Notes under the pieces: model-generated
What the model saw: only the letters and a program-made list of their open reading frames with translations
What the model was told of the DNA's origin: nothing
The model's database searches: none
Program-made: the position numbers and the translations under genes
Shown: in pieces, positions 35,202-41,792 of the stretch
Layout: every line of letters begins with the position of its first letter
How positions within the stretch are numbered: the stretch's first letter is position 1
Assembly: GCA_020536535.1 (NCBI GenBank)
Contig: JAHLWZ010000733.1
Span: 1-64,000, forward strand
DNA length: 64,000 bases
Origin: Pelomyxa schiedti
Lineage: Eukaryota; Protista; Evosea
Direction of reading: 5' to 3'

Positions 35202-37744
35202 ATGGCCACACCTGTGTACGCGGTTGTCAAGTGCAAGTTCGATGCCCAAACGGAAGTGCAATTGTCGATACAACTTGGGGAAACAGTGGAGGTTCGCTTT
35301 TAGTTCTCTCCCAGGAGGAGTGTACTTACAACCACAGGTTTTAAAAAAATACCCCCAAGGTTGGACGTATGGGCGAAACAAAGACGGAAAGGCTGGTATT
35401 TTCCCTAGCAATTATGTTGAGGAAGTGGTTGGACCTGTTACTACACCCGGACCACAAGGAGGCCTTGGCCCTGTTAAATTTAGGTTTGTGCCTTAGCAAA
35501 AAGGTTCCTTTTATTCTGAACCTTCTTTTATTGTGAAGAGTTCAAGCCATCTATGACTATTCGGGCAGTTCACCAACTGAACTGTCATTTAAAGCTGGGG
35601 ACGAGTTAGATGTTGTAGCAGATAACCTCCCTGGAGGCTGGTGGAGGGCTGTGATGAATGGGAAAGTAGGTCATATTCCATCTGGATTTGTGCAACGCCT
35701 GCCTGATCAACCTACTCAACCAAATAATCCTACTCCCGCACCAATTTCAACACCAACCCCCACGCCAACCCCAACGCCCACTCCCACCCCCACTCCCACC
35801 CCAACCCCAACCCCTACTCCCACCCAAAATCCTTCTGCCCCACCAACAAGCACAGGCAGCCCCACCACTCCTGGGAGTCAAACTCAAACTCCAACTCCAA
35901 CCCCTACGCCAACACCTACACCTGCACTCACACCTACGCCGATACCTACCCCAACCCCCAACCCACCCCCAACACCAACACCAACTCCGAATCCAACGCC
36001 CGTAAATCCGACAGTATCTACACCCACTCAATCACCAAACACTAATCCTGTAACGCCCACTCCAGCACCCACCAATACACCCGTAGCCGTCCCTCCACCA
36101 TCGCAAAATACAGGCAATCTACCGCCTCCTGACCAGGCATCTGGTGGGGATGTCTATCCCTACAAAGCAAAGGCAAAATTTGCGTATACTTCAACAAAGG
36201 ATGCAGAGCTTACTTTCAACTGTGACGATGAAATTACCATTGTCAATCCTGGGAGCAATGGTTGGATTCTCGGCTTGATCAATGACAAATATGGCTATTT
36301 GCCTGCCTCTTACGTGGAAAGGATAGGTAACTTCCACTTTGAGAACGTATGTTCGTTGAAGTTTTCTCAGACAGCGTTGTTGAGCAGACACCAACAAATC
36401 CCGATGTTGCTCCGCCTACACAAACTTCTAAACCTACTGGAGCACCAGCTGAACAACCTGCAACTCAGCAAGCAATTCCTCCTCCTACAGAGACCCATCC
36501 TCCAGCTCAGGCAAGTGAGACAACACCTCCACCAGTGGACAAGCCAGTAACGTCAACAGTGCCACAACCTACTGTTGAATCTGCCGGCGCGGCGGCACCC
36601 CAGATTGTGTGCTGCATGTCTTCATTCATCTTGCTAATTTTGTCTCCGTAGCTACTTCCTTATAAAGCAATTGCCTTGTACGACTACAAAACCACAAAGC
36701 CTCACGAGCTTGCTTTTAATAAAGGAGACGAACTCACTATTGTAAAATCTTTGCAAAAGGTGACAATGTTCTCTGTGAAGCTTGCCCTCACCACCAACAG
36801 GGTTGGCTCTTTGGTACCCTAAACGGAGGTGCGGGAGGCTTGGTACCTTCGAAGTTTATTAAGGAGATTGCTCCACTTGCCAGATATACAAATACTACCG
36901 ATACTCCGCCTGGAATGTATGTGTGAGTGGTGTGTCAACTGTTAATAATAGCCAGGCCAAAACCTATGACCGCCGAACTGCAAAAAGATCAAAATTTCGG
37001 ATTTAAGGGCTTTTCTCTCGGTCTTTTTACATCTCAACCATCTGCTTTGCCATTCTTGTGTCCAATATGCAAATCTGTTGCAGAAAATCCAGTAACACAC
37101 TTAGCCACAACTGAGGTATGTATTAGACATCTTCATATCCGTACCCAACTTTCACAGAACACTGTTTTTTGTCACAAATGCATCAATAGTTGGTTGGAGA
37201 GGTTCAAGAGTTGCCCGATGTGCTCCAAAGCTGTCTCAGCCTCTGAAATGGGAGCCGTTCCACCTTCTGTTATGGCTAATTACTCAGCGTAAGTGTATTT
37301 TTTGAATATCACCCACTAATGTCCTTCAGTCTATGCATGCAATGCGTTAACAGTGCCTATGGGTGCAAGAATATTTCTACTCTTGCTCAACATGAACAGC
37401 ATGCTCTCGCATGCCCCTTCCACCCCGTTCATTGCCCACACACGCAATGCTGGAGGGTTTTCAGCCGTGGCACCATCGAGGAGCATACAAAAACGTGCCC
37501 CCACAAACCCTCACCAGCAACAACACACTGCACAGTTCCAGTTTGTGAGTGGAAAGGAACTCCGGAAGAACTGCCAACCCATCTTAAGGAATCCCAGTCC
37601 GCACACATTTCCACTCTCTCCAATGTCGTTAATACACTGATGCGGGAACACACGGAAACCCAAACTGCACTAAGAAACCTTCAGCAGACGGTTATGATTC
37701 AAAAACAGCTGATTGACAGTCTTCTCGCTGCCAAGCGCACTTAA
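35202..37744 (+). CDS. 4xSH3 + Pro/Thr linker + RING-like + TRAF-type zinc fingers + coiled coil protein
   Basis: SH3 motifs: AVVKCKFDAQ..GWTYG..GIFPSNYV; AIYDYSG..ELSFKAGDEL..GWWRA..GHIPSGFV; AKFAYTS..ELTFNCDDEI..GWILG..GYLPASYV; ALYDYKT..ELAFNKGDEL..GWLFG..GLVPSKFI. RING CPIC...FCHKC...CPMC. TRAF zinc fingers CVNSAYGC..HALACPFHPVHCPHTQC..HTKTC. Confidence 0.88.
35745..36010 (+). repeat. Coding (ACN CCN)n repeat encoding (Thr-Pro)n linker
   Basis: ACACCAACCCCCACGCCAACCCCAACGCCC... translates to [10 protein letters not shown]. Confidence 0.9.
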
Positions 37745-37846
37745 GGAAAAACCAAGAGTAATGTTTGAACAAAAAAAAAGGCCAAATTGCCTTTTCACTA
37801 GTACTAGTTAAAGAATATCTTTGATTCTTTCCCCTTGTTGAGTGAA

Positions 37847-39890
37847 CTAGGAGTCCACTGTTGTCAGTTTGGTTTGTAAGTACATTTGTTGTTTTACAAG
37901 GATGTGCCGAATAGGCTTGTAAATCTCTTGGTGGTGCTGCATGGTGTATTCCGGCAGCAAGTCAACCGTCAGAATTTGGTGGTGTGTGGTTTTGGCGGAG
38001 AAGTAGCAAAAGGCTGTCAGGGTAGGTCCCGTTTTTGCTCCTCGCCCTAGTATCGTCTTTATTGGGCGTCTCATGTAGTGGCCTTTCTTTATCTGGGGGA
38101 ATTATTTAATAAGGCATTGGAAAAACAAATGTATACCCCTTCGTACTCATCCAGGTTCATCAGTGTTTCATCATCTATTTCCCACAATTCCCCATATATT
38201 TGGTGACCTTGATCTGTTTTATATTAACGCAGGTCAAAAGAATAGCTGCAACCATGTACTTCTGGGTCATAGATAAGGTAAGGAACTCCACATTGGCCAA
38301 TGACTAGCGGGAAGGCATCCATTGTGGTTGCTTCTCCAATAAAGTGGGACTTACTCAGAAACTTGTGGTTCCAGTGGAAGCCTCTTTTAAGTGTTCCATA
38401 CACGAAAAGTGTGTGACTCTGTGAGGAGGACTTTGTACTCCAGAAACAAAAGTACAGAAGGGAAAGTGCAAGCCCAGCAACCCACAATAGAATCCAAGGG
38501 AAACCTGGTACAGAGTTTGCACTTAAACAAAAGTACTACAAGAGTAAGTACCAATGGGGAAAGAAAAAGGTACATTACCATAAGTAGTCCACAAATGGTT
38601 ATCAAGATGAAAATTGATTTCCAGTGCAGAGAAAGTGGAAACTTATGCTTACAAATAGCACCAGCACATATGCACTTACTTCTGCCGAAAAATGCAAAAT
38701 AAGGATCATGGCGTAAGTGCCACCTGTTCTCCCAACTGTCGACAATTTGGTCAACTTGTGGATAAGGTTTGGTGCGAACACGAAATTCCAATGGGCCATT
38801 TTCCAGAATAGGGAGATCTTTCTGTAGAATTTTCAAAACAAATACCAATGAAATGAGTGAGCACCTGCCAACGGAACATGGCAGCGCTAGTACAAGTCAA
38901 AAACGGGGATAGCTCAATCAAAATGACACGTCTGCTCGAAGGTAGATATGCAAGGTCCATAACATAGGTGTCCTCCCCAACATGGGGGTGAACTTCTGAC
39001 CAGTAGTCCAGCAGGGCCGGCTTCAACCATTCGATCTCTTCAACTAAGTGTTCATATAGAACATAATGGTCGTACTGGGAAATAGCAGTAACATGACCAC
39101 TCTTGACAAAAACTCGGAACTCATAATCATAACGCATTTCTGGCTCCCATGCACGTAATACTACTTGCTCAGGTTCACCGAATTCCAGCCAGTCTATCAA
39201 ATCAGAAAAAACCCTCTCACTGCTCAGAAGTAGGCTCATCGCCTCTTCCCCAGATCTAACGCACAAATCAAGGGCTCTAGAAGCTGCTGCGGCCCGTATG
39301 TTGGCGCGGGAGGCGTCAGATACATCACCTGATGAAGTAAATTCTTCCTGAATGGCATAAAACCGCTCCAAAACACGGTCCCGGTTCAGAGGCTCTGCAT
39401 CTTTACTAGAGATTGGTAAAGAAGATTGCAAAAGTTTTTAAAGAGATGGGAGGGGAAAGAGAAAGCAAGAGAAAAAGTTATGGGTAATAAACGTTGATCT
39501 GCCACAGAGACGTAAAAACGCTCCGTTTTTCTTGAATTGGCTGTTGATGATGGCATCCAGTGACGCCGTCAGTTTCTTCAGTACGGCCACAGCATCGCAC
39601 GTAAACTTGCAAGTTGTAGTTGTCACACCATCGCCGTTGATCACAACAAACTGGTCCCTTTGCGTGTACCTGCAGGAGTAAAACGCGATAATCGCAGCTG
39701 CCTCTGTCCTGGTCAAAGGCACGAAAACAGTGTCGAACGTGAATCTCTGCAAAGCCGGGTACCACACGTCTATGTCGAACGCCAGGTTCTCCTGCCTCAG
39801 CCTATGCTCCGAATTGATCATCAACTTACGTGCCGCCCGGTCCTGTCGCACTTCCGCACAACCACCAACCTGCACCCCGGCACCACTCAT
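37847..39890 (-). CDS. CDC123/R2K-like ATP-grasp domain + 2 TM helices + gamma-glutamylamine cyclotransferase (AIG2-like/GGACT) domain, apparently one gene
   Basis: ATP-grasp: FDIDVWYPALQRFTFDTVFVPL, GAFLRLCGRS(T)KD, LLLSSERVFSDL, YEFRVFV..HVTAISQY, YVMDL, VILIELSPF. Hydrophobic segments SIFILITICGLLMYFCL and WILLWVAGLALSLLYFCFW. GGACT: LFVYGTLKRGFHWNH, PLVIGQCGVPYLI, IYGELWEID..LDEYEG, YMRRPIK. A 43-nt phase-0 intron (38578-38536) joins the frames. Confidence 0.78.
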
Positions 39891-40016: not shown

Positions 40017-41792
40017 TCACAGACCCCACATGTTTGTTGTTCCCAAGACCGCCTTGCTCAGAGCCTTGAGCTTCGGCGTGGTCCCTTGCCAATCTGGAAG
40101 CTCCAGGTTGTCCAGGCACGTCGTGTCGGGCACGCAGTCGTCCGACGTGACCAGCGTCGCGAGGATCGTCAGGCCGCAGGGGACGTCGGATCCCACAACT
40201 GGCGAGCTGATGATGGTGCCGTGGGTGGCGTAGTCCACGGGGATCAGCACGGACTTGGCGTTGCCGACGTCGGCGATGCGCTGCGCAGTGTACGACGCGT
40301 ACGTCAGCGGCGTTTGGTTGTCCCAGTTGCCGTTCACCACGTAGACAGGGACTTGCGAGTACTGCGGGATTGTGGGTTAGTTGGGGGTCAAGGTTCTCGT
40401 TTGGTTTTGTTTTCGTTGTTTTTTCGCGTTTGGCAGGATTTTTGGTATTATTAGTAGTATTGTTTTTTTGTTTGCCACAGAAAAGAGATTGATACGTTGG
40501 GGACTTGTCTCCAGTACTGGTCAATTGGGTATCTAGGCCAAGCATTTACATCAAGTAGCCAGGATTCTCCGGCATGGGTTGTGAAGAAGTAAGTTTTGTC
40601 TTGGGCACTGAGTAAGTCGGCGGGGTACTCAGAGCCAGGTTCCATGAGAAGAATCTCCGATGACATGATGTTGTACTGCAGCGGGGCGTCATACAGGCCG
40701 CCCTCACCAGGGGGGAAGGAAAAGAGCTGAGTGAGGGCTTTGACGTCATCAGCGTTGCACCGCACAAAGCGGTAAATGATTGGAGGGATGAGCATTCGCG
40801 CGTACTGGTATGTCATTCCTGTAGAAAACAGGGCCTGCAGGGTGGATACGTATGGCTTTGCCAGGGGAACCTTTGCGGCACATGTAGTGTTCACCAATTC
40901 GTCGTCTGAAAGAGCTGTGTACATTTGTCGGAGAGTAACAAGTGGGTCCAGTGCTCCCCACAAAGAGCTGCACCAGGGATCTGTGCCACAAAGAGCCATC
41001 ATATACCTCCCCACGCTATCGCTGATTTGATCCATATCAATGAGTTTATAGATATCTGGAGGCACTGTGCCGTCTAGGAATATTGACTTTGGGTCTACCG
41101 TGCGAATGAACATGAATTTGTGAGCCAACCAGGTGCCGTGGGACCAGGCGTAGAGGTGATAATTATTGCCAACCTCCGGGACTGTAAGCTGTTGAATTAG
41201 AAAGTCCAGGTCCCTAGCTGCATTCAACTCTGTGAATTGGGCCAAGTTGTCACCCCATATGTTCTCTAAGTCCTGAGCGCACTGGGCGTCGGGCCAAGCA
41301 ATTCCGGAAGGGCAGACCAACGGAGTAGAGAGTCCAGACCCGCGCTTGTCAGGAAGCATATATGCCACTCTATTAGAGAACAAATCAGGCACATCGAACG
41401 TTGCCCAAGCTCCCTCGAATCCCTGATGCAAAAACAGACTTCCACGACCTCCTCCACCCTAAGAAACAAACATTAATGCAACCTTAAAAACAAATATATC
41501 TCTGATTTGGTATTTAAAAAAAAACCTGCAACATCCACAAGTGGGTGTCCACAACTGCTGTGGGGTCAGAAGGCACCAACATCGTAACCCATAAGTTTAT
41601 GGTGGCGGGGTTCTCGGGGTAGTTCTCCCAGTCCAATGGCACCCCGGTCACGTTGGCGCACCACGCCTCGTACCAACTTGGCAGAGACGGCTGGTTGATC
41701 AGGTCGTCGGGGCACGACCCCCACGCCCACGACGGCGACGCAGACGACCCCACAACGATCGCTGTGAGACACACCAAGACGGCCGCAAGCAT
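40017..41792 (-). CDS. Secreted alpha/beta-hydrolase (peptidase S33/TAP-like)
   Basis: Signal peptide MLAAVLVCLTAIVVGSSA; WMLQGGGG oxyanion region; DKRGSGLS; AARDL; nucleophile YAWSHGTW; IFLDG; NGNWDNQTP (Asp); ATHG (His). Confidence 0.85.

Follow-up and report, generated by a model that had tools for sequence, protein, structure and literature searches.

The window analysed here is a 64,000-nt stretch of Pelomyxa schiedti DNA (contig JAHLWZ010000733.1, positions 1 to 64,000, of assembly GCA_020536535.1). On its minus strand, at 39890-37847, lies a gene in which a Cdc123-like ATP-grasp domain and a gamma-glutamylamine cyclotransferase (GGACT) domain are joined by a hydrophobic hairpin. Sequence reading and exon-by-exon translation give 6 exons totalling 595 codons, with introns of 87, 43, 43, 39 and 44 nt that all have GT..AG ends and compatible phases. 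The locus is one gene encoding a three-part protein of ~595 residues. An earlier note on this DNA had proposed this single-frame arrangement of Cdc123/R2K ATP-grasp, hairpin, and GGACT, and it is upheld by spliced RNA, by at least 41 fused relatives that include intronless open reading frames (ORFs), and by a two-domain model of a relative. The RNA comes from the runs X1 and X2, which are single-cell RNA sequencing runs labelled as protist metagenome, made from one sample by the study that also produced the DNA runs containing the window. These runs are kept as contigs only, so that the presence of a transcript and its joints can be read and amounts cannot, and rare forms drop out. The relative used most below is P0051 of Gefionella okellyi, the best full-length match (53% identity), with which window exons 1, 3, 4, and 6 are collinear. 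The features of the gene are as follows, in the direction of transcription.

39493-39890, minus strand: exon 1, with the start codon and the N-terminal (pre-ATP-grasp/RAGNYA) part of the D123-like domain, from translation; 51% identical to P0051 residues 7-99; ends in RLCGRS (basic loop, 39495-39512), which reads on as T-KD past the 87-nt intron.
39406-39492, minus strand: intron 1, 87 nt, GT..AG, phase 2, predicted from sequence; the joined RLCGRS-T-KD resembles the family consensus RLCGRSPKD.
38865-39405, minus strand: exon 2, the ATP-grasp core with GEPEQ, EFRVFV, SQYDHY, YVMDLAY and IELSPF, from Pfam D123.
39105-39122 and 38901-38918, minus strand: EFRVFV and IELSPF, respectively, from the translation of exon 2.
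38822-38864, minus strand: intron 2, 43 nt, from RNA joint 38821/38865 in X1 and X2.
38579-38821, minus strand: exon 3, the D123-like domain's C-terminal end (NGPLEFR, SWENRW), then a basic linker and the initial 13 residues of helix 1, from translation and hydropathy; aligns with P0051 residues 282-323.
38536-38578, minus strand: intron 3, 43 nt, GT..AG, phase 0, within helix 1, taking the reading out of the D123 frame and into that of GGACT, from RNA joint 38535/38579.
38253-38535, minus strand: exon 4, helix 1's final 6 residues, then a loop of 7, helix 2 and the start of GGACT, from translation and Pfam GGACT; aligned with residues 4-57 of mouse and human GGACT.
38380-38403, minus strand: VYGTLKRG, in exon 4.
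38214-38252, minus strand: intron 4, 39 nt, from RNA joint 38213/38253 in X1 and X2.
38137-38213, minus strand: exon 5, the middle of GGACT with GELW and LDEYEG, from Pfam GGACT; aligned to residues 59-82 of 2kl2.
38137-38154, minus strand: LDEYEG, in exon 5.
38093-38136, minus strand: intron 5, 44 nt, from RNA joint 38092/38137 in X1 and X2.
37847-38092, minus strand: exon 6, the remainder of GGACT and a conserved C-terminal tail, from translation.
37877-37951, minus strand: the C-terminal tail EYT...YKPIRHILVKQQMYL, matched by P0051 residues 574-602 and by the family consensus.
37847-37849, minus strand: stop codon TAG, in exon 6.

The RNA contigs join the two domains in one message. Joints 38092/38137, 38213/38253, 38535/38579, and 38821/38865 are each present in contigs of both runs. 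The third of these removes exactly the 43-nt GT-AG phase-0 intron 38578-38536 described by the earlier note, and its shorter-side overhang is 79 nt in X1 and 243 nt in X2. Record 9 of X2 (919 nt) starts at 37834, close beyond the stop, and takes in exons 6, 5, 4, and 3 together with 58 nt belonging to exon 2; record 10 begins at the base following record 9 and extends to 39175, inside the ATP-grasp core; and X1 agrees at each joint. Contigs run unbroken through 38700-38400 between the D123 core and the stop codon, and none among the X1 and X2 contigs ends or starts between the D123 and GGACT domains. The reading frames point the same way. Exon 3 has a single Met, at its last codon, exon 4 has no in-frame Met until after YGTL, and a stop codon immediately upstream of exon 4 closes the GGACT frame. 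Because of this upstream stop, the lack of a Met before YGTL, and the RNA that runs through, GGACT cannot be produced alone; a separate GGACT gene is ruled out on these grounds, and the claim that the domain has no start of its own holds. Two other products were considered and rejected. An alternative donor, GTAAGT near 38680, would keep the D123 frame and reach a stop at 38387, but it is not used, since the RNA contig crosses 38579-38821 unbroken. Were the 43-nt intron read through, a tail-anchored D123 protein also ending at 38387 would result, a form absent from the RNA contigs. The X2 contig lacks one T of the T3 run at 38501, in the loop between the helices, which X1 and both DNA runs keep; taken literally, this would shift the GGACT frame, and it is probably a sequencing or assembly error.

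The fusion of D123 and GGACT is very probably real, and comparison with public sequences shows it to be conserved across distant protists and not specific to this locus. When the exon 2 region was used in a word search confined to proteins under 395 residues, 2 cut proteins came back in which D123 is followed by GGACT. An exhaustive search with exon 2 returned 57 representatives at E<=1e-30, and most of the best matches were 480-790 residues long and matched at ~residues 100-300. In an alignment of 47 long relatives (A1), D123 is found in 47/47 and GGACT as well in 41/47. Fused forms come from the malawimonad Gefionella okellyi, an acanthoecid choanoflagellate, Picozoa, the chrysophyte Epipyxis, and the foraminifer Nonionella, and the range of the family thereby takes in malawimonads, choanoflagellates, Picozoa, stramenopiles, and Rhizaria along with this amoeboid protist. 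Two of them, P0077 (606 aa, from an NCBI assembly) and P0072 (586 aa), are single uninterrupted ORFs on genomic contigs, so in those genomes the fusion is independent of splice prediction. The fused family is unstudied, and its sequences stand in public collections without useful names; one JGI entry bears only the name gamma-glutamylaminecyclotransferase. A search for literature joining Cdc123/D123 or ATP-grasp with GGACT, AIG2, or cyclotransferase found nothing relevant.

Some of the top matches are ~300 aa long and look unfused, and we weighed them as counter-evidence. Most end within 60 residues of the core. The closest match overall, P0001 (58%), seems from its protein record to be unfused, but on its 234-kb contig (L001) the gene call ran into an intron at the position of window intron 2, and the remaining exons, those of GGACT included, follow downstream in order, so that the L001 gene is collinear with the window gene. 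By these comparisons the short matches are cut gene calls and not evidence against the fusion. Read by eye, one further intron of this gene, after ..FRWE at L001 4925-4965, seems to stay in frame only with a GC..AG pair (36 nt). A tree was built from 120 rows of the exon-2-like core by a quick IQ-TREE search, with no classical Cdc123 sequence included. In it, the window sequence and all 41 fused rows fall on the same side of a branch whose Shimodaira-Hasegawa-like approximate likelihood ratio test (SH-aLRT) value is 98, and on the opposite side are 44 D123-like proteins of 267-482 residues, 0 of them fused. For bacterial or archaeal relatives, three family patterns gave 138 pattern matches, of which 0 were confirmed by tblastn, a weak negative.

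The N-terminal half of the protein is an ATP-grasp domain of the Cdc123 type. Pfam D123 (PF07065) matches exon 2 with 65.9 bits (4.5e-18; cut-off 24), and the R2K_2 and R2K_3 models match more weakly. Structure was tested on P0051, not on the window protein itself, with an AlphaFold2 model built on A1 (predicted local distance difference test, 86.8; predicted template modelling score, 0.81). The N-terminal part of this model matches Schizosaccharomyces pombe Cdc123 (4zgp; Foldseek E 8.4e-12, template modelling [TM] score 0.71 by target) and human Cdc123 (8phd; E 1.5e-11). The catalytic set of the R2K clade consists of two basic residues in and after strand 2, an ExR, a strand-4 Asp, and a last-strand ExN, and in the human protein K104, D233, and D246xN248 belong to it (PMC4431377). 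By eye, from motifs, the window protein keeps the R and K of RLCGRS-T-KD, the EFR, and the family-invariant Asp of YVMDLAY. Translation places all of the motifs quoted in the earlier note (RLCGRS-T-KD, EFRVFV, IELSPF, and LDEYEG) where that note had them.

The resemblance to Cdc123 as known from S. pombe (4ZGN/4ZGP) and human (8PHD) nevertheless has clear limits. Both proteins belong to Pfam D123, have, judging from P0051, the same fold, and, from motifs read by eye, share the basic pair of the strand-2 loop, the ExR, the strand-4 Asp, and an acidic residue in the last strand. However, P0051 is 16-20% identical to the solved structures, the D123 profile is covered over positions ~105-254 of 300 only, and the basic pair reads K...R in Cdc123 and R...K here, as DxN there reads ExS here. 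The window protein is also without the acidic low-complexity insert of Cdc123, adds a hairpin and a GGACT domain, and belongs to a clade with at least 2 copies in this genome. Ten D123-like matches checked among the best 150 (49-91 bits) did not reach beyond about profile positions 97-293 of 300. The window protein is therefore likely, as far as sequence can tell, to be non-orthologous to the classical single-copy pan-eukaryotic Cdc123; it is a member of an unstudied family and probably not the classical Cdc123 factor of eIF2 assembly. It resembles in kind the "second set" of CDC123 homologs in amoeboid eukaryotes, Legionella, and giant viruses, which have been predicted to be protein-modifying ligases (Burroughs, Zhang, and Aravind, 2015; PMC4431377) and which are likewise non-classical, often multi-copy, and found in protists. 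Neither a GGACT/AIG2 fusion nor a transmembrane segment is mentioned in that paper, which founded the R2K clade, and the second set includes Legionella, whereas family patterns gave no bacterial or archaeal relative of the fused family.

The C-terminal half is recognized by Pfam GGACT (PF06094) in two exons, at 29.5 bits (1.2e-6) in exon 4 and 24.4 bits (4.5e-5) in exon 5, against a cut-off of 22.8. VYGTLKRG aligns to residues 6-13 of A2LD1, and the Glu of LDEYEG (38140-38142) aligns to residue 82 of 2kl2, the catalytic Glu82 of GGACT. According to PMC12569754, which cites Oakley et al. (2010), the YGSL-type motif (here YGTL) lines the pocket, Glu82 is catalytic, and the substrates of GGACT are free gamma-glutamylamines. 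The C-terminal part of P0051 matches human GGACT (3jud/3juc) with a TM score of 0.75-0.77 and 28-29% identity; its other matches in the superfamily are to GGCT (17% identity), ChaC2 (14%), plant GGCT-like proteins (16%), and YkqA (22%). Among the branches of the superfamily, the modelled domain is closest to GGACT. Human and mouse GGACT (A2LD1; 3JUB, 3JUC, 3JUD, 1VKB, 2KL2) give its best structural match and share YGTLKRG and the equivalent of Glu82 with it, but they are free-standing, soluble proteins of ~150 residues, whereas the domain in this gene forms the C-terminal portion of a ~595-residue protein and carries an extra conserved tail (EYT...Y.PI.HI.VKQ..YL). Judged from motifs read by eye for the ATP-grasp and from alignment for GGACT, the catalytic residues of both domains are retained in the window protein, except that ExN has become ExS. 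The earlier note had GGACT with its LDEYEG motif continue after the 43-nt intron; the domain does follow there, but two further introns (39 and 44 nt) flank the exon that holds the motif.

Between the domains lie two hydrophobic helices. Helix 1 is made of 13 residues at 38579-38617 in exon 3 and 6 residues at 38518-38535 in exon 4 (mean Kyte-Doolittle value, 2.29), and helix 2 of 19 residues at 38440-38496 in exon 4 (2.01); a Pro/Gly loop of 7 residues separates them, and basic residues flank both sides. The reading of the ATP-grasp domain into two such helices was correct, but the intron said to come after them lies inside helix 1, and helix 2 is downstream of it. No N-terminal signal peptide is found in the window protein. 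Because of this and the 7-residue loop, the hairpin would probably keep both domains on the cytosolic face of the membrane, and the same-face topology suggested earlier is plausible also in view of the hydropathy values of 2.0-2.3 and the basic flanks. The gene on L001, from a related genome, likewise encodes two hydrophobic helices, with a 41-nt intron in helix 1 at the position found in the window, and the model of P0051 has two long helices between its domains (343-371 and 377-417). In a crude 19-residue scan of linker hydrophobicity in 36 relatives, at least one hydrophobic segment was found in 14/36 and at least two in 7/36. The hairpin, a probable membrane anchor, is real and recurrent, yet the family is not defined by it.

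What might such a protein do? GGACT acts on gamma-glutamyl-amines, which it cleaves as their glutamyl moiety cyclises to 5-oxoproline. ATP-grasp enzymes of the assemblage to which the N-terminal domain belongs activate a carboxylate and couple it to an amine as an amide (PMC4431377). Two folds with these chemistries, conserved as a fusion, suggest that one bond is made and then unmade, and the earlier proposal of a single chain that makes and removes gamma-glutamyl isopeptide bonds remains an inference from the established chemistry of both folds. In the scheme that we have in mind, the ATP-grasp domain would activate a carboxylate as an acyl-phosphate, most simply the gamma-carboxyl of free glutamate, and the activated glutamyl would be joined to an amine, with a protein lysine, a polyamine, or a membrane amine as candidates for it. 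Later, the GGACT domain would take the gamma-glutamyl off as 5-oxoproline and free the amine. The outcome would be a reversible mark or a protect-then-deprotect step. Our favoured reading as a whole, one three-part gene with a hairpin on the cytosolic face and with ATP-grasp and GGACT acting on the same bond, is tentative and falls slightly short of an even call; the coupling of the two domains on one bond, argued from analogy, is possible and somewhat doubtful.

What weighs against this reading touches each of its parts. Exon 1 is represented by an RNA contig over 39737-39886 alone and 39474-39661 is without RNA cover, so the junction of exons 1 and 2 stands on homology alone. Over half of the scanned relatives carry a short hydrophilic linker instead of a hydrophobic one. 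If both activities worked on one shared small molecule, they would merely burn ATP in turning glutamate into 5-oxoproline. Classical Cdc123 is described as an assembly factor, and we know of no substrate or product for any Cdc123-type protein. The last-strand motif of the ATP-grasp domain is E-L-S, with Ser replacing the Asn of ExN, and this is nearly invariant through the family. Finally, a subclade from an AT-rich organism group (P0088, P0093, P0097, P0113, and P0140) has kept the ATP-grasp residues and lost the Tyr of YGTL, and where GGACT has its catalytic Glu this subclade has Tyr or Cys. Its GGACT-like domain is likely, from these substitutions, a pseudo-enzyme or a binding module, and because both YGTL and the catalytic Glu are lost there, the ligase domain can work without cyclotransferase catalysis. 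The altered ExN and this pairing of a dead GGACT with an intact ATP-grasp would both fit an alternative in which the domains are fused and not chemically coupled: the D123-like part, working like classical Cdc123, would be an ATP-binding assembly or chaperone factor that serves a partner protein and forms no bond, and the GGACT part would salvage gamma-glutamylamines or bind a ligand. The nearest solved structures, in which Cdc123 is bound to domain III of eIF2-gamma, are also in its favour. We consider it unlikely, since the fusion is retained across supergroups with both catalytic sets conserved in most members, the D123 domain of P0051 is remote in sequence from the solved Cdc123 proteins and the fused clade stands apart from the non-fused D123-like proteins, and most R2K enzymes have been argued from their conserved residues to be active ligases (Burroughs et al., 2015; PMC4431377).

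The domains could also be coupled on a small molecule and not on a protein mark. An amine would be gamma-glutamylated at the membrane, handled by another enzyme or a transporter, and released together with 5-oxoproline, in a capture-and-release or protecting-group cycle resembling the gamma-glutamyl cycle or the BtrJ/BtrG pair. In butirosin synthesis, BtrJ reportedly puts a gamma-glutamyl group on an amine, and BtrG is said to remove it as 5-oxoproline. This is an ATP-grasp gamma-glutamyl ligase and a GGCT-fold remover with the logic proposed here, but the two are separate bacterial proteins that act on a carrier-protein-bound antibiotic precursor, and BtrJ is outside the R2K clade. Their genes belong to the set for the 4-amino-2-hydroxybutyrate (AHBA) side chain, and BtrG-like proteins form a branch of the GGCT superfamily (PMC12569754), the superfamily to which GGACT belongs; the BtrG-like YkqA is a weaker structural match to P0051 (E 5.5e-5). 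A cycle of this kind would suit the action of GGACT on free gamma-glutamylamines (Oakley et al. 2010, as cited in PMC12569754) and the recurrence of the membrane hairpin in part of the family. The neighbouring genes (alpha/beta-hydrolase-like, RING/Sina zinc-finger, and SH3) include no linked partner enzyme or transporter, though, and family patterns found no bacterial operon relatives, again a weak negative. We regard the small-molecule cycle as improbable; it overlaps with the favoured reading and differs from it in the target alone.

A further difficulty for the favoured reading lies in exon 2 itself, where the RNA holds a sixth joint, 39035/39076, that the earlier note missed. It is present in X1 and X2 with unambiguous placement and removes 40 nt (39036-39075, minus strand, GT..AG), a size matching the normal introns of this genome (39-44 nt). 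With these nucleotides goes the conserved YDHY segment, and the frame shifts so that a stop comes after 4 codons. According to the depth figures, no contig retains 39036-39075, so the skipped form is the only one seen in the one RNA sample. Taken at face value, the locus would mostly yield separate or truncated products: the D123 frame would end at about residue 246, and the hairpin-GGACT part would go untranslated or start from an internal Met, the first in frame being the M of YVMDLAY, since the frame that leads into the rest of the protein after the skip has no Met in the upstream part of the exon. Against such an outcome, the stretch is intact in the genome and encodes the family-invariant QYD and the YDHY segment, which would be unexpected if it were always removed, and relatives carry the whole protein in one ORF. 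Moreover, both runs come from one sample stored as contigs, which drop rare forms and cannot fix the isoform proportions at 39036-39075. Because it encodes invariant residues and is intact in the genome, we interpret the skip as an alternative splice that is unproductive, not as the source of the sole product; 39036-39075 may be an "exitron" or an unproductive splice, and a locus given over mainly to truncated products is very improbable.

Cdc123, an essential protein of eukaryotes, combines the fold with the residues of an ATP-grasp ligase, yet no ligation product is known for it. Fusion of this kind of domain to an enzyme of defined bond specificity, with gamma-glutamyl-amine in and 5-oxoproline and amine out, gives a concrete prediction of the bond that is made. 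In its boldest form, the fusion would be a "Rosetta stone": the Cdc123/R2K.1 clade would make gamma-glutamyl-amine (isopeptide-type) bonds that are undone by GGACT, classical Cdc123 would mark eIF2-gamma transiently, and protists would own a membrane-bound, single-chain writer and eraser for a reversible gamma-glutamylation of lysine. We put this forward as a long shot.

The RNA also points to a second copy of the gene. Contigs of X1 match the window up to 39405 and 38165 and then continue into sequence absent from the window. In our own translation, these loose ends read ..WVRLCGRS-V-KD and ..LIGLDEYEG, and a search of the window for the 44-nt loose end found at the acceptor of exon 2, with up to 3 mismatches allowed, gave no match. 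By their translations, the loose ends point to the transcript of an expressed paralog of the same fusion kind. Upstream of the gene, G>T differences at 40182 and 40251 are common to RNA run X2 and DNA run X4 and are not found in X1 or X3, which suggests that two haplotypes or strains were present in the material.

On the other side, the fusion gene faces a convergent plus-strand neighbour at 36927-37791 that encodes a RING finger and Sina/TRAF zinc fingers. The RNA contigs of this neighbour end at 37764 and 37791 and those of the fusion gene extend to 37801 and 37834, so that the 3' ends of the two genes are only tens of bases apart. Farther along, the plus-strand gene at 35651-36822 encodes long Pro-Thr repeats and SH3 domains (Pfam SH3_2, 1e-7).

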